Assembly: GCA_002269645.1 (NCBI GenBank)
Contig: NIVC01001131.1
Span: 1 to 64,000 of the forward strand
Direction of reading: 5' to 3'
Length of the DNA stretch: 64,000 nucleotides
Source: Macrostomum lignano
Lineage: Eukaryota
Position numbers and translations under genes: made by a program. This document shows, piece by piece, positions 8,901-23,600 of this stretch. The number at the start of each line of letters is the position of its first letter. Within the stretch, counting starts at the first letter, position 1. The notes below the pieces were generated by a model. That model was given only the letters and a program-made list of their open reading frames with translations, ran no database searches and was not told where the DNA came from.

Positions 8901-11225
8901 AGTGGCTCAATATGTACTGATGTTGGGTCGGCTGAAAAATAGAATTGCACTTGTGTAATTGAAAGTTCCACTCAGTGGTGATTAGGGTATTCATATTTCT
9001 AACGGTGAAATTATTCATGGTAAACTAATTTATTTGAAATGTTATTTTTACCTATACATTACCACATATTGTGAAATAAAATGCTTAGTTGATAAGATAA
9101 CAAACTTCTTACGGACGGGCGGGGTGATTGTCGTATCGCCAGGTAGTCCAGAAAATTGGCAATTTATAGTAGCGATGAATAATACGGCCAAATTCTGATG
9201 CATATCAATCAATGTGTGAATTAATTTAAAGTCATGAGAATGGTGCGCTTGCTGAAATAATCAAGAAAACACTCTACCAACTGAATAAGTATATTAGCAA
9301 TTTTTTAAAATGAACATAATTGTTTTATAACTAACGTGCGCGACGACCACACTTTGATTGCAAACTGGGTGCAGAATGCACTTTCTAATGTGGCCCATGT
9401 CACTGTGCCAAATTGAAAAATATCGATGAGCCGTTTCGTCAGTATGGAGATAAAATAAAGTCGACACTTCGCTGTTTCTGCAAGCTGCAAAAACAAACTT
9501 TAATTGAACCAGCTTAAGCAGATTTTCGATTGTTTTTAGCAATAAATTTACTTTCCTTACAAGAACTAGGAAGGTCAGAAACACAGAATTGAAATTTGAA
9601 TCCGGATTTGACCACTGAACCGTCCGTTCGGAACACAAGAGTCACACTGCCAGTGAATGTTGTCTGTACTCCATTGTGGTCACCACCCGTTAGGTTAAAC
9701 AGAGACATATTACCAATGCTTGGTACGACGCCCTGAAATACTTGCAGCATGTCATATCCTTTTTCAGTGCGGAATGAGGCGAAATTTATCCAGACCGATT
9801 GTAAGTTCTTGGCCTGAATGCTCCAAGCTACTCTCAAATTGTTCGAATACTTTTGCGCTCGAAAGTCGGGATGACTGTATCGTTCTCCACTAATAGCTTT
9901 TATCATTTCTGTGGCAGGATCTGCATTTTATATGGACATACATGTATTAGAATAGTTGCAGTAAATGACGATTTTTAGCGATTTTTCAGTGTTACTTTTG
10001 TTTACATCACATTAAATAATTGCTATAGGGCAGATAGCTAGTTAAATGTGATTTTACTCTAATTGTAGTAGTGCAGGCTTGGGAATTGTTAGGGGGTTAT
10101 GATAGACAAGGGAGTTTGGGAGTTTTTTTTACCAGTATAGAGCAGTTGGGCTCTAGAAAAGGAAGTCATGTAGCTCATCTCGGGACTTAGAAAAACAGAA
10201 GCAACTGGAGCTTAGGGTCAGCTAAGATTAAGCGAGTTAAGATCAGGGAATTAGGAATTGGGAATACATAAAACTACTATCAGTAGTTTTCGCTAGTAAC
10301 AGCACACTATGGTAGTCATTATGTTGCACTCGGGAACTAATAATGCCTTGCAACTAATTGCATATCACTTTTCTAATTATAATCTTTCGAATTATAATAA
10401 CAATTATGGATTCCTGTCTTAATTATTTAGTCTTACATAATGAGAATTAAGAACAGCAGAGAACCTGGCTGGTGGCAGCAAATACCAATTCAAGCCAGTA
10501 TCCACTAAGAACCAAAACGAGTAAAATAACAAGTAGCCTAGACCAGGCAAGCCACGGCGAAGTTTTCTTTTGTGCCGATAAGTTTATACAAATGTAGTTG
10601 ACTAGACAGGGAGGGAATGATTATCCAAATTTCGGTGGCACTTGTCAATAAAATTATACACGGATTCGATGTGAAAGTGAAAACTTCAAGGACAGATGAG
10701 TATAATCAAATTTGAACTTTCTGAAAATACAGCACTATGAAGAGCTATATTATGTCAATATAAATATTTCCATAGATTTTCCCACAAAACAAAAAACGAA
10801 TGCATTCAGCAACTAAGACTGCGTAAAAAACTTACTGACATAATAACTGTCTCCCATAAAACTTGCACCAAACGTGGCCCTGTGCTTGTATCGAAAACTG
10901 AAACCCACGTTCCATCCCACGCCGTTGCTTTTGCATCGTAGTAGAACAGGGCCAGCGAGCCAGAACTCTGAGAGAGACGATTTTCCAGACGACAAACGGA
11001 ACCTCTCTGTAGCATTACTTGGCGATTCCGATCTTTCGTACAAGTGAACTGTGCGGCAAATGCTCAAATATATAAAAAGGGTGAACTGTATCTCAACTGC
11101 ATTGTTAGTGCTGAGCAGCCAACAGTGATCAACATTGACACTAGGTCCTCGGTAGTTTACATTCGAGGAATTAGCCTGGACAATACCTTCTGGTTCGCTT
11201 AGAATTGTATTTATTGAGCATGAAG
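5918..11225 (-). CDS. CUB-CUB/Ig-like repeat single-pass membrane protein, paralog A
   Basis: CUB exons 11225-10836 and 9920-9561 are homologous to those of paralog B. Further exons: 9484-9336, about 8931-8760, 8692-8542, 8467-8304, 7617-7467, about 6960-6700, 6655-6506, and TM exon 6131-5918 (PALIGLAVATVVSVLVAAFFF). Most joins are GT-AG and in phase; two need +1 nt. A possible signal-peptide exon at 11414-11349 (MVRLQLDWKIFLVLLLS) has an unresolved phase. Confidence 0.75.
7958..8010. mobile_element. 53-bp hAT-type MITE
   Basis: 21-bp TIRs CAGGGACTACTC(G/A)AACATGTT with 1 mismatch, flanked by the 8-bp direct repeat AAATATGT (7950-7957 and 8011-8018). Confidence 0.75.
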
Positions 11226-12365
11226 CTGGTTTTTCGTGTGAAAAGTAGATTAAGTAAAATAGGTAGAATATTAAATTTACGTAGAAAATTTTAAATGGTT
11301 GCACACCTGTTTATTTCTTGTTTTATAGAGCTTGTGAGAAGAACTTACCTCCAAACTATCAGTGCTTAGTAGTAAAACCAAAAAAATTTTCCAATCCAGT
11401 TGTAACCGTACCATTCTTTTATGCGTGTTTGAAGAATCTATAGCGAAAAGTTCCTATGTTCTGAATAAATTTTGTTGTCTTGAAGAACCTTAAAACAAGA
11501 TGCTTTAACTTAAGGCTGTGTAAATGGGTTCTATAATATATTTAGTCTCTCTATCCGTGGCCGCAAGAACAAGTCTACTTGTTGAATTTCACATGAAAGT
11601 TAAATATATCAAAGCAGGAGAACAACATGGACATGAAGTGTAGAATCGTAGAGTTAAATCTCAGAATAGATCGATTTTCTTTAACTGTAATATAGCGACG
11701 AATTTGGTTCAGGCTTGGTTATATACTGTATACCGATAGGATCGAGGCTTCATAACACTCTAGTGGTGTATCGATAGTTTCGTGGCGCAGAACCAGTTGT
11801 TGAAGAAAATGCTTTGTTTTGCGCATTTGTATAAGTGCGCGCTGATAAACTTGCACGCCTTTCGTCGCTTGATTTAAAAAAAATTTTTGTGACCAATTTC
11901 GAATCACACAAGAAGTATACGAATGTGATACGCTTGTATTCGTGGACTTGCAAGGGGTGGCAACAGAGGCGTCCAAGCAGCTCGGATTGGACTAAAAGTC
12001 TAAATTTGACCACCAAATGCAAATGGAAAAAGCCAAGATCAATTCTTGCAACGTTTTCTATCAAAAAGTCAATTTAATATTAGACTAGCTGTCTTCATTC
12101 ATTCTGTCTTTCATATTTATACTAAAGGACTACAATCATTGCTAATTAAAAAGACAATAAACTAAGACGCATTTTATAGCCCGTGTTTTTGTACGCGCGA
12201 CGCATGATTAAAAAAAAGCAAATTAACGAAAGAAGACAATTTTAATTCAATTTTTTCAATTTTTTACGCATCAAATGGCCTAAACAGAGTAAAATTGTTG
12301 AGAGCGTAAGAAAAAAATACGTGACAAACCAATTGGAGGGTTTCTTTCTGGCTGACATACATGTA

Positions 12366-14616: not shown

Positions 14617-17600
14617 CTGGTTATCAGAAGATCAAATGTGTTAAACTATTATTTTTTCAATTAACTTTGAGTGCTAATCAATCCCAAAAAGTATATTTTC
14701 AATCTACTTACGGATCTCTCTACTTTAACGATTCGTGAAGCTAGGCTGACTTTACTCTCGTAAACATCTTTGTCTTTGCTTCCCTGACGGCCCAGAATTT
14801 GGTCGAGCCTGCGCAGTAGGTCAGTGGTATCTATGTGAAATTTTATTCATTCTTACACTTACATGTACTTAGACCTGCACTTTTGAAGTACGCCATGACA
14901 ATATACAAGCGTATAGAACGTGCTAACTTTTGCTATCGCTCTAGATAAGACTTTAGACATTCAAAATAAGACTGCATAGGATCGCAAGCAAGGCCAGGCT
15001 AGCCACGGCCAGAGCAAGCCCAGTCTTGGCTGCAGGAATGGCTTGGCCATAGACTAAAAAATGGAATATCAAAATGAGAATAAGACGCTCAATATGAGAC
15101 CAGGAGTGTGAAAGCCTTCAGATATCGCTCTAACCCTCTGACCCTCAGCCAGCTCTCCTTCTTCACCCCTTGGGTTGCATCTGACCCCTTGGATTTCACT
15201 GTGATGGCACCATCGATTTCTGCAGCAGACCGTCAGCGTCTGATCGACGCAGTAAACAATGGATCAACCATCCTAGCTAGCTGTTTGTATGGTGACTGCC
15301 AAAAAGCAAATAAATTACGTTCACTCCCGGTCTCATATTGAGCGTCTTATTCTCATTTTGATATTCCATTTTTTAGTCTATGGCCAAGCCATCCCTGCAG
15401 CCAAGACTGGGCTTGCTCTGGCCGTGGCTAGCCTGGCCTTGCTTGCGATCCTATGCAGTCTTATTTTGAATGTCTAAAATCTTATCTAGAGCGTCAAAAG
15501 CGATACTGCTTTAAAATTAACCTAATTAAATAAATGAAAAAGTGAATACCTGAGTTGGAGCACCTTGATTCTTGCCAGCATGTCAACATGCCCCGCCGAG
15601 TATTGTTCAATTACATCTTTAACGTCGTAAGGGCGAAGGGCTTCACGAAATTTTCGCCTAGCAACAAAGTATTTGACTTTTCGAATTACTCGAATGGCAT
15701 TTTTGTGCATCTCCGTTAGTTTCATCGGCGTTTCTTCGTCTAAAAAGTGAAAACAAAATTGATTTAAAGCACGCGCATTGATTAATACCAGGAATAAGGG
15801 AATTCTTTCTGCTTTGAGAATATTTGTAAAAATTTTTTTACCAAAAGCAAAAGCAAGTTTAGTCTCAAAAAAGCGGAGCTAGCCTATCGGAAATTTGACT
15901 TCGTATTTAGCCATTCAATCGTTAAATTAAAAGCCGGTAAATACTGATCGCTTACCATCTTCTTTCTGAGAAATGGAGGTCAGTGATGGCTGCGGCTCTA
16001 GACCACCTCCAGGAGTGTCGGATATTGCCAAAGAGACGTGGCTTCTGCAAAAGATACAAAAATGTACACTTTACTTTACGTTTTTATGTAAAATATGTTT
16101 ACTTGTGTTTTGCGGAAGACACTTATGTTTTCATGAATACAATCTTTAAATAGCAAATAAAATTGACGTATTTAAAATATGAAATTGCGTCCCATACTCG
16201 TAGTAAAGAATTGGCCAAAGCGTTAAAATAGGCCCTCATTTGTCAATTCAAAGAGGCTCTTGCTGCAGTCCAATAAGCGAAGCATAATAATTGCCTTATA
16301 GATATTTTGTTAAATATTATCGTTTTGGCATGCTCTCAATTAAAAATTAATACGCTCAAAACACTAGAAATTTTGTAGCCATGTTGCACTGCTAGTGATA
16401 TATCAATTATTAATAATGCGTACGTATATTGATACTGTTAATAAACATATAAGTAGTTCAGTTGATAGTTTTTATTACTAAGGCAGATATAAAAAATCAG
16501 TGGCAGTAGTGAGTGAACACAAGTATTATATGCGTCATTAATAATTGCTGTCGCGCAAGGAGAAATAATAAAAACAAACTATAATCTAAGCAAGGAAAAG
16601 TTTCCTGTCACAATTTTTCAGTGATATTTTGCTTTTAGTATGGCTGTAAATATTATTTTCGTTTTGTTTCTATCAAAGGGAGTGTTTGTTATTTATATAT
16701 TTTTGAAATTTTTTGCTCGAGAATTCACCGCCATCGATCACCTAAATGAAGTTGCCAGATCGGCAAACTTGCGAATCACGGATCGTTTCCGGGTTTTTGC
16801 CAAACCGCGCCTTCGCTGCTGCTCCGCGTCTTCGTCAGTCAGCTGCATGGACTCGTCTATTGACGAAGCATCGCTGGCTGGAGCGAGGACTGCAGCTGTG
16901 GCTGCAGTGGCTTCGGCTTCGGAAGTCACTGCATCACCGACGACAAATGACGACTGACTGTCAGCGTGCGAGAAGGGAATCACGTTGGGTGGTTGATTTG
17001 ATCTAGTAAATAATTGCAAACTAGCAAATTTGGTCTAGCTGATCGGTCTGACTCTAGCAAATAATTTTCCATATTATTTGTTACAAAAGCGTTGTTTTCG
17101 ACATAATCATCGTTATATAGATAAAAATTTCTTTTTATGTGACTTTTAACACTTAGGCTCGTCGCTCAATGGTATTTTATAGTATGGAGAGTTTTAGGTA
17201 TACATGTACATGTAAAACCAGGTAAGATAGATAGATAAAAAATTTAATAGTATATGCTGCAACTCAAAGTTCCATTCTAACACTTTACAGAAAGCTAATA
17301 AAAAGTAAATTCTAATTTTGCTTGCGCTAAAACATTTAGAAATTTAAGTTATAAAGGATGCACAACACTGGTGTGATATTTTTATTAATTGGCGTTGGCG
17401 CAATTAGGGGAAGCGTTAGTAGAGAGAACCATGTAATCTTTAAAATTTTGTTTCATCAAAACCAAAAAAGATAAATAAATCATCACAGTAATAAGAATCT
17501 TTTTTAAATAGTTTAATAGTTCTACCAGCTGTTCAGTTTTGGTAATGAGAAACTGGATAATATTATAAAATTTCACCGAACAAAAAATTGTTAGTAAAGA

Positions 17601-20600
17601 TTAACAAACAGAAGCTAAAAGATGGAGGACAGTGTACTGTATTACTAATTGTGGTAACTCACTCTATACCAATGGAACTCTACGGAAAAAGTGTTATTTA
17701 GGCATAGCTACACATGTTTAAAAGGGCTTAAAGCTTTACGCGAAAGAAAATTTTTGGTATTTTAAAACTAATTGGACCTTTCCCATTTTTGAGTCTCAAT
17801 ATCTTTACTGCTTTGAGGAGCGTATTTCAAAAAAGGTGAAAATTTTGATTAAAAACACAGTTTCCTTTCTGAAGTAAGAGCAATAACCAAACGAACTCAC
17901 TTTCCACCCGACGAAGATGCACCGCCAGCTTCAGCCGTCACGGAGTTCGGGCTACTGGGGTCCAAGTCCGGCATGGCGTTTCGTCTAGATGGCATGTAGC
18001 CGCCGGAAGCACCGCCGCCCCCGCCGCTGCCGCCGCCACTTCCGCCACCACCACGATCGCAGGACCGCTCCGACTTGTTTCGTCTCATTGTTGGAATGCG
18101 GCCGAATTTGCTGTTAAAGTTTTTAAAAAAAATATAGTACATCCTAGCACAGTATTTCCGAGCAAAGGTTTTATTTATTAGAGAGATGAGGCTTTTTAAA
18201 GAAGTAACTACCGTCAAGTTGTAAATCAAGTAGGAGTTTTTTAGGCAAATTTTATCTCTCAGGTATTCTGAGTGCTTTTCAAGGCTTTATTTATTAGATA
18301 TCTACTGTGTTATACTCGTACATCTGTGAGAAGTGTACTTGTAATTACACAATCACTGCGTGCAGGTGCGCAATTGTGTCTCGTCTCGCAACGGTGGCAA
18401 GTTTCTATATATACTGTGTTTTTTCACGCTGTGAGAACTATAAAATTATTGCCCGTATTGACAAAAATCAGAGATCTAGATCCGAGTATCAGATAATCAT
18501 GATAAGCTTATATTAAAAAAACAAGTACTTAGTTATAATTACAACTGACTATTTTATTTTTTCTTGATCTTTCTAGCTAATGAATTGCTTAGAGTAACTT
18601 TTTTCCATGAAAATACGCTAACTAATGAGTAATAGATAAAAACTATTATATTTCATTATCTGAATAATGAAATTTCCACAGATATTTTAAATATAATACC
18701 TTCTCCAGCTGTGACCTGGGCTGATTGGCCCCTGATCATTGCTTGCTATTAGATATGGCGAACTGTTCGAAGGGTATAAATTTAGAAACAGACCATCATC
18801 ACAATCGTTACTAATTTGATATTGCTATCCATTTGCTAATCAATAAAATTTGTCAATACATAGTCATTAGTTTGAAAGACTATGATTTCCACTAAAATTT
18901 GTTTTTTACTGGCATGTGGTACTTAGTTTTACATATTACATTTAATTCGGGATTAACTGCACAAACAGAGACCTGTATATAACATGGAAGATATATAAGC
19001 AATAAAGTTTACTTTATGATTTTATAGTCTTTACACAAGGAGATCAGAATTTTTTTTTGAAACAAGTTTTTAAACATCACTCAACAGCTATAGCACCTTT
19101 TCCCACTAAAATCTGACCAGCATCAAATAATGAGGGTTCGCCCAAAGATTACCGAGCTGGCATAAAGAGTCAATTAGCTAAAATGTTAAAGCTGAACCTG
19201 AAATCCCAAATATCCGGGCTCCTTGCGGAGCATTCGTAAACAGCTGGTTACTTTCAAATATTTACCGAATATACCGAATTAGAGTAACAATACTATAACG
19301 GCGCCCGAGGATTCGCTATTTACGCCCAAAAAGCATGGTTATTATAATGTTTTTGTGCTTTAGACATTTTGCCTCAGCAAGGCTGGGGGAGAGTGAATAA
19401 AAGAGCGGGTAAATGGGGGTGTAGGGGCAAAGCCCTCACATTGCAACAGTAGACACTTTCATTTGATTAAAACGAAACTTGAAAATTTTCGGGCCTAAGT
19501 GCCCGGGATTGACTAAGTGCCCGCTGGATAAAAAGGTCATGGTACAGTCTTAATTAATATCTAGTACAAATCAACATCCATGAAGTACATTTCTACGAGC
19601 TTAGTTGCACAATTTTGTCGACGGTCAAAAAGTCGGAGTCCGAGGATTATTTACTCGTAGAACTTTGGCTTCTGCAGCTTTAGTAGCTTTATTTGCTCTC
19701 TATGTAAGTTCAATAATCTTTTGGGTTCGCCTTTGCAATTCGACTGAGCTGCTGGTAGAGTATTAAAGCATTTTAGTATGTGCCATGAAGTGAGTTCGAG
19801 CAGATGATATTAGGGCGTAAATAATCCAAAAGTATCAATTTTGACGTCGCAGCGTGCTTCGCGACCAAGCAAAGGAGATAATGTTTTTAGTTTCAGAGCA
19901 AAAAGAGCTGTGCTCAAGCAGATTAATTTCATAATAAAAATGCAAAATTAATAGACAGATACACCAATGATAAACCTTTGAATGACGTTTTATAACTTCA
20001 ACACAATTTCAACATACCGAGGCGAATCATTGAAAAAGCTGGAGAAAGCGGAATTAAAATACGCAAAATAACAAAAGAAATGCAAACAGACCGACACCGA
20101 AAGGCGAAAGTTAATAAAATTTTAGTCAACACGATAAAAAACTTTCATCAACTCCGTATGGTACTACAGCATCTGCAGCAGACACTGGATATGAATACTG
20201 TTCAAACGTACCGTCTAAAGCTCGATGTGCTGTCATGGTACAGACTTCAGTAGAAGAAGAGTAGTTTTAATAGTTGAATTATTATGTGTATTATGTTTTA
20301 CGATGGCGATGGTTATGCTGATCGAAAAATTTAGCTGCCTAATAAAATTAATTTCATTGTAAATTGTTCTCTATTTCTCGAAAAGAAATTTTTACAAAGG
20401 AAAATACGAAAATAGGAATATGGGCAGTCATTGTAATTCAGATAGCAACCTAGGTAAAGAATTTGATCTACAGCAGAATCAACGCTTGAGAGCAGACTCA
20501 GTGGTAATCAATATATATTAAGGAAACTGCTACTGCGCAAATATTATTTAATTTTAGAAATCGATCATATCCCATATTGATTTAGTTAGCATCCTAAAAA

Positions 20601-23600
20601 ACAATATTAAGTCTGTGATAATATTACAAATATTACTTTTGTAATTTAATGCTATTAGCTTCTATGCCTTGCCACCAGTGAGTGGCAGAAATTTCTCGCT
20701 CCGAAGTTCGTAATATTACAAAAGTAGGTAGAAGGCGATTTTAAACTTGAAATTTTCGACAAGACAGTGACTATCTAAAATAAAGATAAATGCGCGTTGC
20801 TCTGGTTCTTAACTCAAACAATGATGGTGCTGCGAATAATTGGATTGTCTCTAAGTTGGATTTTATGCAGAAAGGTGCTTCCGAAATAAAAATATATATT
20901 TAAATAGAACACAGAGCTTCATAGACATATTGAAACAAAAATTAGTTAATAACTAGACGATACAAGCTAAACACACTGGTAGATACATGTATTCTACAGA
21001 AAGCCCTATTTTGTGCTGCGACTAAAGACGAAGATGGCAACTTTAAAGCCATGTGCACAAAAAACTTGTGCTTAGAAGAAAATGGTTTATGTACTCGTAT
21101 CTAATTTAAGGATTTTAACGAATGCGGAAATGACTATTTTATTCGATAGAAAGATAGCCATTTTGGACTTGAAGCACAATTTCAAAAAAAGTAGTGTTCG
21201 CTTACCTGCTTGGTGATCGCATTGGTCGCATGTGCGGCTTCCAAGTGGCAACAGAGGTGCTTGACGGATCAGCGGCATAGCAACGCCATAGCGACTGGAT
21301 TAGCGTTGCAGCCGGTACCCTGCGTCTAATTAGGTGCTTTTGCCGCTGGTGTTGCTGCACTTTTAATGCGAAACCCGAGCCGAGAATTCCCTGGAATCGA
21401 GGAAAAGAACCGATAGTCTTTAAGATATATTAAAATAATTCATATTTTTTAGATAAATCTCTAAATAAGACGAAAGCAATTTTAATTAGACATTCTTCTA
21501 ACTTTTCTGAATTGCACTTTAGGCGCATATATTTAATAGTGACAGCATGTTTAATACTGTACAGGCATTTTAGTAAAAAAGGAGAGGCTTGTTTTTTAAT
21601 CCTATATTTAATTTATTGAATGAATATAAACTAACTAGGCCGTTTAATTTTTCATTAGTGATGCCAGGATGCACCAGTTTAATGCTAGCTATTTGTTAGA
21701 TACAGTGCGGTGCAAGCATAGATTGGTTAATAAACTGTCAAAACTATAACAAAATTTCAACTGAGTTAATCCTGGTAGCACCAATTAATTAACGTAAGAC
21801 AACAAGCTCGTTACAACATGCAAAAGTGTAGTCTGGCAAGCAAGGAAAAATTAATAAATAGAAGGCAGTCGCAGCAGCGGCTTACAGCTGGCAGCGCAAA
21901 GAACGATATGCCGGCAATGGAACAGAAAGAGGCAACAATTTTTCCGCTCCAAGTTTTTGGGGTCACGTCGCCATAGCCAACTGTGCACAAGGTGATCTGC
22001 AAAGGTTAATTCACATTTTTCGGGGCGTTGCTTTTCTTTACCATGGCATAATTTTTCGTTGTTTCCATTAAGGCGTTGAACTTTTTGTTTAATTCAGCAA
22101 ATTAAATAGAAAAGTTAAACTGTAAATTATATTCACTTCAACAGCGAATTGCGGCACCTTTGGCAGAATCAATCACCCGTAGATGCACAGTTGGACTATG
22201 GTTTGCGACCTGAGATTATGAGCAAAGTAGTAGTTAAAAATAAATAGGTAAAGCTACCAGTCAGCGCTTGATTAAATATTATCGATAGAGTTGCCACGAA
22301 TTTGATAAATACCCTCGTATACCCAAACAAATCCAAACAACCAGATGTCATGGTATTTACTTTGTACCTTTTACTCGTACAACCTCTCATTTACGTTTAA
22401 TAGCATTTTATAATCATTTAGCTAAGTAAATGAATCCTTTAAATTCTTAATTTTCGATCCACTCCACTTTCTATTGAATTTATGGTTACTATATCTTTTT
22501 TCGTTCTATTTGGTGCAAACTGTGTTCAATTCTATGCAACACAAGCAGCGAAAACGAGCCAAGCCGAAAGACATGGTTTTCCATAGACATGTTCAGAATA
22601 CCAGCAACCAATTTGGTCTAAATTGCATTCTATTTGGGCTTAGCTCACAATTCTCTCACGATCCTCCACCAAGCTGATTTTGGAATAAGGGTCTCTATTT
22701 TCCATGTATCAATTACTCGTGCGCGAGTTATTATTGGGTAGGCCAAATTGAACGCAGCTATTTCCAAATTGCTTTCTGCTATCTGCTAGGGCCAAACCCT
22801 AAGTTTTTGACACGCCAGACTGCTGGTGAATTTTCACCAAACTGAACGCAAATTTCACCAAATAGAGTACAAAAGGTATAATTATCTTATTTCAAGTGCT
22901 TTCAAAATATTTTGTCTATTTTTTCATTAATTACTATCCGGCATAACATTCGAGAAAAAAAAGTTAGTTAATAAGTGCTTAAGACTGTAATTATCAATAC
23001 GAGCGACTAAACAAACAGGCAAAATAGCTAGCATTATATTTAAAGCTTAAAAATGTGAAATGTCATTTGGCTATTTTTAGGCTTTTTAATTATCATTTTC
23101 ATTCTAACAAGCTTATCTCAATCAGCAACTTCATTTATCATTATAACAATCTCGATAATCTCGCCGTCTGTGTTCGTCACTTTGGGATTTCAATTTTAAT
23201 TCTTTCAGCATCTGTTGTTAAGAGTATTATTTTGTGCTGTCAACTCACCGGCGGCAAGGCAAAGAAGCTAATAATTGTCAGGCAGGCCGCGGAGCAGGCC
23301 AGTTTGCCCAGATAGGACACTGGGACAGTCTGACCATAGCCAACTGTGCACAGGGTGGTCTGCCAAAATGTTCATTGAAACAGGTAACCGCCATATCGTA
23401 ATAAAAATAGCTGTGTATTTCATCGAAATACTGTTACAGTTTGAATAGCTGCATAATTTAAAATATAAATTCAAAAATAATTCAAGAGCAAACGCGTAAC
23501 CAGCCTACTTGCAGTAGTAGGACAATACAACGCAGTATAAATATCACATCATCGCGTAAATCATGTACAAACTGAATCTAATTTGAAATAAAGTGCTACA

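Follow-up and report, generated by a model that had tools for sequence, protein, structure and literature searches.

The locus described here raises the question of how a single exon would be selected from two equal-length pore exons that lie in tandem in one KCNQ (Kv7) potassium-channel gene of the flatworm Macrostomum lignano. The gene lies on the minus strand of contig NIVC01001131.1 (assembly GCA_002269645.1), of which positions 1 to 64,000 were analyzed (this whole stretch of 64,000 nt is referred to below as the window), and its exons run from approximately 31.6 kb down to 13.3 kb. Exon 5, which ends ...ALWWGV at a gtaagt donor, is followed by pore exon 6a and then by the canonical pore exon 6b. 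Because both are 111 nt long, transcripts with both exons or with neither would retain the reading frame and evade nonsense-mediated decay; therefore, exclusivity must be imposed at the splicing step. We found that a single antisense element in the intron between the two exons, designated el1, can pair with the acceptor of either exon, and we tentatively interpret this arrangement as a switch in which competing RNA structures enforce mutually exclusive splicing, a variation on the docking-site/selector scheme.

The exons of the window gene aligned to KCNQ proteins, and the gene combines an ion-transport domain containing a GYG pore with a KCNQ C-terminal domain. A near-identical M. lignano protein, P0240, carries PF00520, PF07885, and PF03520. 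It is encoded on contig NIVC01001769.1 of the same assembly (L007), which is 97.4% identical to window positions 24500-20401 and represents either another haplotype or a recent duplication of the window locus. An older, more distant M. lignano paralogue is represented by three copies (L008, L009, and L010) that are mutually 98% identical; its exons are approximately 82% identical to those of the window, and its introns are unalignable with them.

Exons 6a and 6b comprise 37 codons each, and their protein sequences are 54% identical. The preliminary description of this DNA had treated them as alternative exons, which their equal length, their trematode counterparts, and isoforms from Schistosoma bear out; its exon details were corrected, in that both exons measure 111 nt and 6a encodes GYGQ, not GYGD. 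Exon 6a differs between the two M. lignano paralogues by 18 synonymous codon changes versus 3 amino-acid changes, indicating that it is a functional coding exon under purifying selection. In S. intercalatum, isoforms P0250 and P0309 (996 residues each) differ solely in the pore exon. A 6a-type exon, with the pattern S-x-LGK...C-L, is present in Paragonimus, Opisthorchis, and Echinostoma, and the 6b type was also seen in Paragonimus and Opisthorchis. The two exons are thus a genuine, ancient, equal-length alternative pair in flatworms, and they show the arrangement known from docking-site/selector systems, tandem homologous exons of equal length, with one exon per isoform in S. intercalatum. 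The loci of Lamellibrachia, Anoplocephala, and Cichlidogyrus (an annelid, a cestode, and a monogenean, respectively) contain a single pore exon and were uninformative.

The sequence TGCACAGTTGGCTATGG occurs exactly twice on the minus strand of the window, at 21971-21987 and 23334-23350, whereas shuffled sequences lead one to expect 0.04 chance matches. Its antisense core was located on the plus strand at 22184-22201 as TGCACAGTTGG-A-CTATGG, with a bulged extra A at 22195, and the similarity across the 3' splice sites was found as ctttggcaga at 22158-22167; both had been pointed out in the preliminary description. The complementarity of el1 exceeds this 17-nt core, as approximately 60 nt can pair with positions -12 to +45 of either exon, with RNAduplex energies of -54.8 kcal/mol for el1:6a and -61.2 kcal/mol for el1:6b. 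To place these values in context, 32-nt exon segments were compared with every 44-nt stretch of the 19-kb gene. The best partner gene-wide was el1 both for the 6a acceptor segment (-41.8 kcal/mol versus -30.0 kcal/mol for the next, a margin of 11.8; z = -5.8) and for the 6b acceptor segment (-41.1 versus -27.8 kcal/mol, a margin of 13.3; z = -6.0). The claim that one intronic element can pair with either acceptor and the first 45 nt of its exon was therefore upheld by el1 being a clear outlier in gene-wide duplex scans. By computation, el1 is thus one sequence complementary to a selector at each exon, and the two pairings are mutually exclusive, as a docking site would require. Energies from longer duplex windows (81 x 91 nt) were abandoned, since GC-rich exons scored almost like el1:6a; the signal of el1 resides in specific helices rather than in summed energy. 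The local hairpin formed by el1 and 6b reached -86.7 kcal/mol (z = -5.8 against dinucleotide shuffles), and none of 200 shuffles folded as well.

Relative to the exons, el1 contains approximately 13 extra bases in several indels, which fall in loops, and its pairing blocks are identical to the exon sequence. It matches the intronic acceptor sequence of 6a (TTTGGCAGA) as well as that of 6b (ACCTTTG-CAGA), so that el1 is not a plain copy of either exon.

Two further pairings involve the same exons. On the plus strand, positions 20651-20683 read GCTATTAGCTTCTATGCCTTGCCACCAGTGAGT, which corresponds in inverted orientation to the final nine codons of 6a (approximately 25 nt) and the adjoining donor site (blastn-short E = 2.9e-5). 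The element that contains this copy, el2, forms the strongest exon pairing in the gene, scoring -52.1 kcal/mol with the 6a donor versus -33.2 kcal/mol for the next partner (margin 18.9; z = -7.1), and the RNAduplex energy of el2 with the 6a donor was -58.1 kcal/mol. The second is a perfect 15-nt intron-intron pair, P3, which brackets el1 and exon 6b and whose pairing would loop both out. With the exception of a foldback element and one short palindrome, P3 is the sole perfect inverted pair of at least 13 nt within 3 kb in the 19-kb gene. As a control, nine other, constitutive exons were subjected to the same scan and gave margins of 3-11 kcal/mol, with one comparable outlier: the exon 8 donor (approximately 17893-17936) against the exon 9 acceptor (approximately 15721-15752), at -30.1 kcal/mol with a margin of 11.2. 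This complementarity may join the ends of that intron. The strong antisense elements thus cluster at the alternative exons, with both el1 and el2 covering splice sites. The coordinates of all features are listed in Table 1.

Table 1: Exons, candidate elements, and predicted pairing partners (window coordinates unless another locus is named).
Feature	Position	Strand	Description
Pore exon 6a	23249-23359	minus	111 nt, phase 0; flanked by cag and gtgagt; ends ISFFALPP
Pore exon 6b (canonical)	21886-21996	minus	111 nt, phase 0; ends ISFFALPA
el1	22150-22211	minus	Candidate docking site; antisense element in the 6a-6b intron, complementary to -12..+45 of 6a and of 6b
Selector at 6a	23326-23372	minus	3' splice site and first 34 nt of the exon; pairs with el1
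Selector at 6b	21960-22016	minus	3' splice site region and first 37 nt of the exon; pairs with el1
el2	20651-20689	minus	Intron downstream of exon 7; antisense to the 6a 3' end and 5' splice site
el2 target	23236-23275	minus	3' end of exon 6a and donor
P3 left arm	23022-23036	minus	Pairs perfectly with the right arm over 15 nt (intron-intron); ~215 nt past the 6a donor
P3 right arm	21680-21694	minus	~190 nt downstream of the 6b donor
Paralogue element	L008 19689-19741 (also L009, L010)		~215-265 nt upstream of 6b; antisense to the 3' half and donor of its 6b

A change of partner by el1 had been proposed for this intron, and folding of transcripts of increasing length predicts it: el1 would move from 6a to 6b as transcription proceeds. 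The predicted fold of 23400..22140, corresponding to a transcript of approximately 1.26 kb that ends just past el1, is closed by the helix between el1 and the 6a acceptor in the minimum-energy and centroid structures alike. Folds that include 6b instead show el1 paired with the 6b acceptor, and the 2.85-kb minimum-energy fold additionally joins the 6a donor to el2. The el1:6b, P3, and 6a-donor:el2 helices are mutually nested, whereas el1:6a crosses all three, so that two alternative conformations result.

In the proposed switch, el1 would serve as a docking site between the exons, and the selectors would extend over the 3' splice sites and into the exons for ~40 nt, a stretch that includes the selectivity-filter codons. 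A single el1 could hide only one acceptor at a time. When transcription reaches el1, its sole partner would be the 6a acceptor; the resulting helix would loop out 6a and hide its acceptor, and 6b would be used as the default. If 6a were already committed to splicing, el1 would be free to fold onto the 6b acceptor approximately 135 nt downstream and hide it, and P3 would then loop 6b out, bringing the 6a donor near exon 7. In addition, el2 may sequester the 6a donor whenever 6a has to be left out. Helices containing a splice site, for example, the tau exon 10 donor stem-loop, are expected to limit its recognition. That pairing masks splice sites in vivo is inferred, as are the direction in which it acts, the kinetic order of events, and the parts played by el2 and P3.

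Comparison with L007 allowed the behavior of these elements over a short evolutionary distance to be followed. The arrangement of el1, el2, and P3 is the same in L007, where P3 keeps 14 nt. Across 4.1 kb, the two copies differ by 76 substitutions and 15 indel events, and 3.2% of columns differ in introns outside the annotated features. No differences were found in the exons and selectors. Three were found in el1 (one wobble change in the helix and two in a 5-nt bulge) and three in el2; the second genomic copy therefore keeps el1 with changes that either preserve pairs or fall in loops. All four differences in helices were wobble/Watson-Crick exchanges (C/U opposite G or G/A opposite U), and no pair was broken. 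When random changes were simulated, 2-9% of trials preserved pairing equally well for el1 and 1-32% did so for el2, the value varying with the copy assumed to be ancestral. The preservation of pairs between the copies is thus a suggestive but weak indication of constraint.

Conservation beyond this close copy was not found for el1 in the relatives scanned. Neither el1 nor el2 is present in the older paralogue (L008-L010), in which a putative el1 homologue at L008 22156-22200 was rejected (score 13 versus a mean shuffled maximum of 22). What the paralogue does contain upstream of its 6b is an antisense element of its own, with 17 perfect nt and an energy of -53.5 kcal/mol (z = -6.9), which forms in the local fold and is identical in L008, L009, and L010. 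The hairpin axis lies approximately 76 nt upstream of 6b in the paralogue and approximately 88 nt upstream for el1:6b in the window. The similar axes are compatible with a single ancestral inverted copy of the entire exon, with one half retained in each paralogue, and also with two foldback events that had a similar spacer. Amid otherwise unalignable introns, both paralogues keep an upstream antisense element covering a splice site of 6b. Paragonimus and Opisthorchis share the exon pair, and scans of their 6a-6b introns yielded no outlier partner. An Opisthorchis candidate at L003 17120-17165 was weak and no outlier, and a recurrent Paragonimus target at L002 20100-20360 was a GC-rich sticky repeat, not an exon copy.

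The selectivity-filter codons were subjected to the same comparison. The preliminary description had noted that the C-T-V-G-Y codons are nucleotide-identical in 6a and 6b, while five of the seven codons of ISFFALP differ synonymously, and had read this as RNA-level constraint. The counts stand, and TGTGCACAGTTGGCTA is invariant across all four M. lignano exon copies. As a sign of RNA-level constraint, the contrast is weaker than claimed: 6a and 6b share an identical block of 20 nt in the older paralogue and of 17 nt in Opisthorchis, with different synonymous states, and no complement to the frozen block was found in either. Because the block is equally frozen where it has no detectable partner, its conservation cannot be credited to el1.

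The competing-pairing interpretation thus retains the outlier pairings, the genuine exon pair, and the predicted folds, and a number of observations weigh against it. In addition to the absence of el1 from the paralogue and the two trematode loci and the lack of a complement to the frozen block in the paralogue and Opisthorchis, the element of the older paralogue is directed against another part of 6b and has no match in 6a. All annotated M. lignano protein models carry 6b and none contains 6a, and yet el1 thermodynamically prefers 6b, which is why a kinetic argument is needed; the kinetic scheme outlined above would reconcile the folds with 6b as the annotated exon. The pair-preservation statistic is built on six changes. 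Between the window and L007, el1 and el2 do not evolve more slowly than their surroundings, as 4.8% and 7.7% of their positions differ, respectively, versus 3.2% of the intron, and el2 is merely 1-3 mismatches from the exon and could be young.

Several of these points are what would be expected if el1 and el2 were functionless inverted micro-duplications of exon ends in nearby introns, generated, for example, by replication template switching or by foldback duplication of 6b and either not yet decayed or kept alike by conversion between inverted arms, with any effect on splicing being incidental. The near-identity of el2 to exon 6a (28/31 in the window and 31/32 in L007) is that of a young copy, and both elements change at least as fast as the nearby intron. 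A different element in the paralogue and none in the two scanned trematode loci fit turnover, not conservation; inverted and foldback repeats abound in the genome; and the similar hairpin axes of the paralogues could reflect the typical spacer of one mutational process. Micro-duplication is a serious, if less favored, alternative, and several points speak against it. Three strong pairings that are independent of one another converge on the alternative exons, all of them overlapping splice sites, whereas nine other exons yield one weaker case. The many indels of el1, combined with perfect pairing blocks, do not look like decay at the local neutral substitution-to-indel ratio of approximately 5:1 (76:15), which simple micro-duplication would predict. 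Every helix difference between the copies keeps its pair, and conversion between arms of only 11-17 nt would be unlikely. Finally, el1 is chimeric, matching the 3' splice-site sequence of both 6a and 6b.

It is also conceivable, though quite improbable, that el1 and el2 are editing-site complementary sequences whose duplexes recruit ADAR to the filter codons ACA (Thr) and UAU (Tyr) or to AUU/AGC at the end of 6a, or that a splice site is edited. In known cases (the GluA2 Q/R and R/G sites, Drosophila and cephalopod channels, and RF00485), an intron likewise pairs imperfectly with an exon encoding a channel pore, and the predicted exon-intron duplexes at this locus cover A-containing codons and resemble known substrates in their bulges and loops, that of el2 spanning approximately 35 bp interrupted by a single U.U mismatch. 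ADARs occur in flatworms, and planarians have been shown to edit mRNA in an ADAR2-dependent manner (PMC8797187). Editing would not, however, require that el1 pair into both intronic acceptors or that el2 extend over the 6a donor. Moreover, a channel in which the Thr or Tyr of the selectivity filter is recoded would probably not survive as a working channel. A match of RF00485 (K_chan_RES) to 6b (21868-21981) was rejected, as it scored 33.1 bits against a threshold of 51 (E of approximately 4e-4) with many broken pairs; it represents coding homology, and the helices of the family are not formed. Matches to miRNA families of Rfam in the 6a-6b intron were far below their thresholds and were disregarded. 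An assembly artefact, such as a local inversion, which the preliminary description had raised, or a chimeric join, is effectively refuted and has a negligible probability, since el1, el2, and P3 occur in the same arrangement on the independent contig L007 despite the 76 substitutions and 15 indel events that separate the copies.

To our knowledge, competing RNA structures are the main enforcer of mutually exclusive splicing, and the proven cases come from arthropods and a few mammalian genes and involve intronic selectors. The competing-structure switch proposed for the KCNQ gene shares several properties with the docking-site/selector systems of Drosophila Dscam1 exon 6, 14-3-3 zeta, Mhc, and srp (PMC6071210, PMC4691838): the exons are tandem, homologous, and of equal length; one sequence is complementary to a copy beside each exon, with one pairing at once; and the selectors plausibly arose by exon duplication, as in the Ivanov-Pervouchine model. 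It differs in that docking sites in those systems lie in the first or last intron and the selectors are intronic, whereas el1 lies in an internal intron between the exons and its selectors cover the 3' splice site and approximately 40 nt of coding sequence. For these reasons, it was filed as a variant of the family and not among its standard members. Furthermore, pairing activates the paired exon in those systems, whereas el1 is predicted to mask or loop out the exon, and the KCNQ case comprises two exons only, with the keeping of pairs across copies limited to L007.

Exons 7a and 7b of human and mouse ATE1 are likewise two mutually exclusive exons; of their elements R1-R5, according to the abstract of PMC7797038, R1 and R4 compete for R3. 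The additional long-range pair R2/R5 may be likened to P3 and el2. The ATE1 elements are intronic, conserved in mammals, and proven by mutation, whereas the KCNQ selectors overlap the exon and the splice site and are computational predictions. Hairpins of the tau type are short local stems that act on one exon; in contrast, el1 would serve two acceptors, and el2 would act over 2.6 kb. Literature searches on mutually exclusive KCNQ exons, in flatworms or elsewhere, and on an element of the el1 type returned nothing relevant in the paper library covered.

Other features of these exons and introns were recorded. GYGD is near-universal at the pore. Exon 6a encodes GYGQ in the window copy and GYGH in the older paralogue (L008 18840-18950), trematode 6a exons keep GYGD, and the window exon ends ALPP rather than ALPA at the S6 gate hinge. 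Judging from these residues, the 6a-type channel may have altered pore or gate properties. The same paper library yielded no description of this alternative exon (GYGQ/GYGH, ALPPG instead of ALPAG). Gene models are faulty in this region: the Paragonimus model P0024 joins both pore exons in tandem. The 69 residues inserted between exon 5 and 6b in M. lignano P0121 did not match 6a and seem to result from faulty gene prediction. In the Tegillarca model P0002, the end of exon 5 is present twice, perhaps a sign that this bivalve has a further alternative exon pair. In the middle of the 6a-6b intron, window 22505-22866 contains nested inverted repeats (22505-22531 with 22840-22866, and 22598-22640 with 22740-22782), and the same part of the intron holds three copies of CCAAATTGAACGCAGCTAT-like units; a long intronic hairpin at this position would bring 6a and el1 effectively closer to each other. 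Within window 20625-20730, el2 is flanked by an inverted repeat of 12 nt (TACTTTTGTAAT ... ATTACAAAAGTA), which could expose el2 in the loop of a hairpin or could be the signature of a small inserted element. A 31-nt palindrome at 21454-21484, located 64-94 nt upstream of the exon 7 acceptor, matches the homologous site of L007 on the reverse strand.

Repeats are also prominent elsewhere in the window. One KCNQ intron contains, at 14937-15493, a near-perfect foldback of approximately 560 nt with inverted arms that include perfect runs of 85 and 64 nt, which is probably either a foldback element or one resembling a miniature inverted-repeat transposable element; a large inverted repeat at L008 23037-24766 resembles it. 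Mini- and microsatellite arrays are abundant (28.3-28.7, 35.4-38.8, 40-47, and 55-62 kb), and one satellite array extends into the intron adjoining the S2 exon. Below 11.3 kb (2177-2545, 9514-9906, and 10813-11304), the minus strand carries repeated open reading frames resembling exons of a neighboring multi-domain gene. Exact look-up of ten open reading frames of the window in the protein collection gave no match.

Taken in its fullest form, the model would describe a central blocker that toggles by strand exchange between two identical selectors, including the selectivity-filter codons, so that exactly one in-frame pore exon is spliced in; the element would derive from an inverted exon copy of which the two paralogues kept different halves, the synonymous sites of the filter would be constrained by splicing structure, and one product would be a GYGQ or GYGH channel in place of GYGD. 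We regard this combination as doubtful. If the switch itself is real, it would be a flatworm instance of competing RNA structures acting on the pore exon of an ion channel, in which the docking site is centrally placed and the selectors extend over both splice site and coding sequence. It would also explain the exclusivity of two in-frame 111-nt exons without recourse to nonsense-mediated decay and would tie RNA structure to synonymous-site constraint in the selectivity filter. Macrostomum lignano is amenable to transgenesis, and the model is directly testable in this organism.

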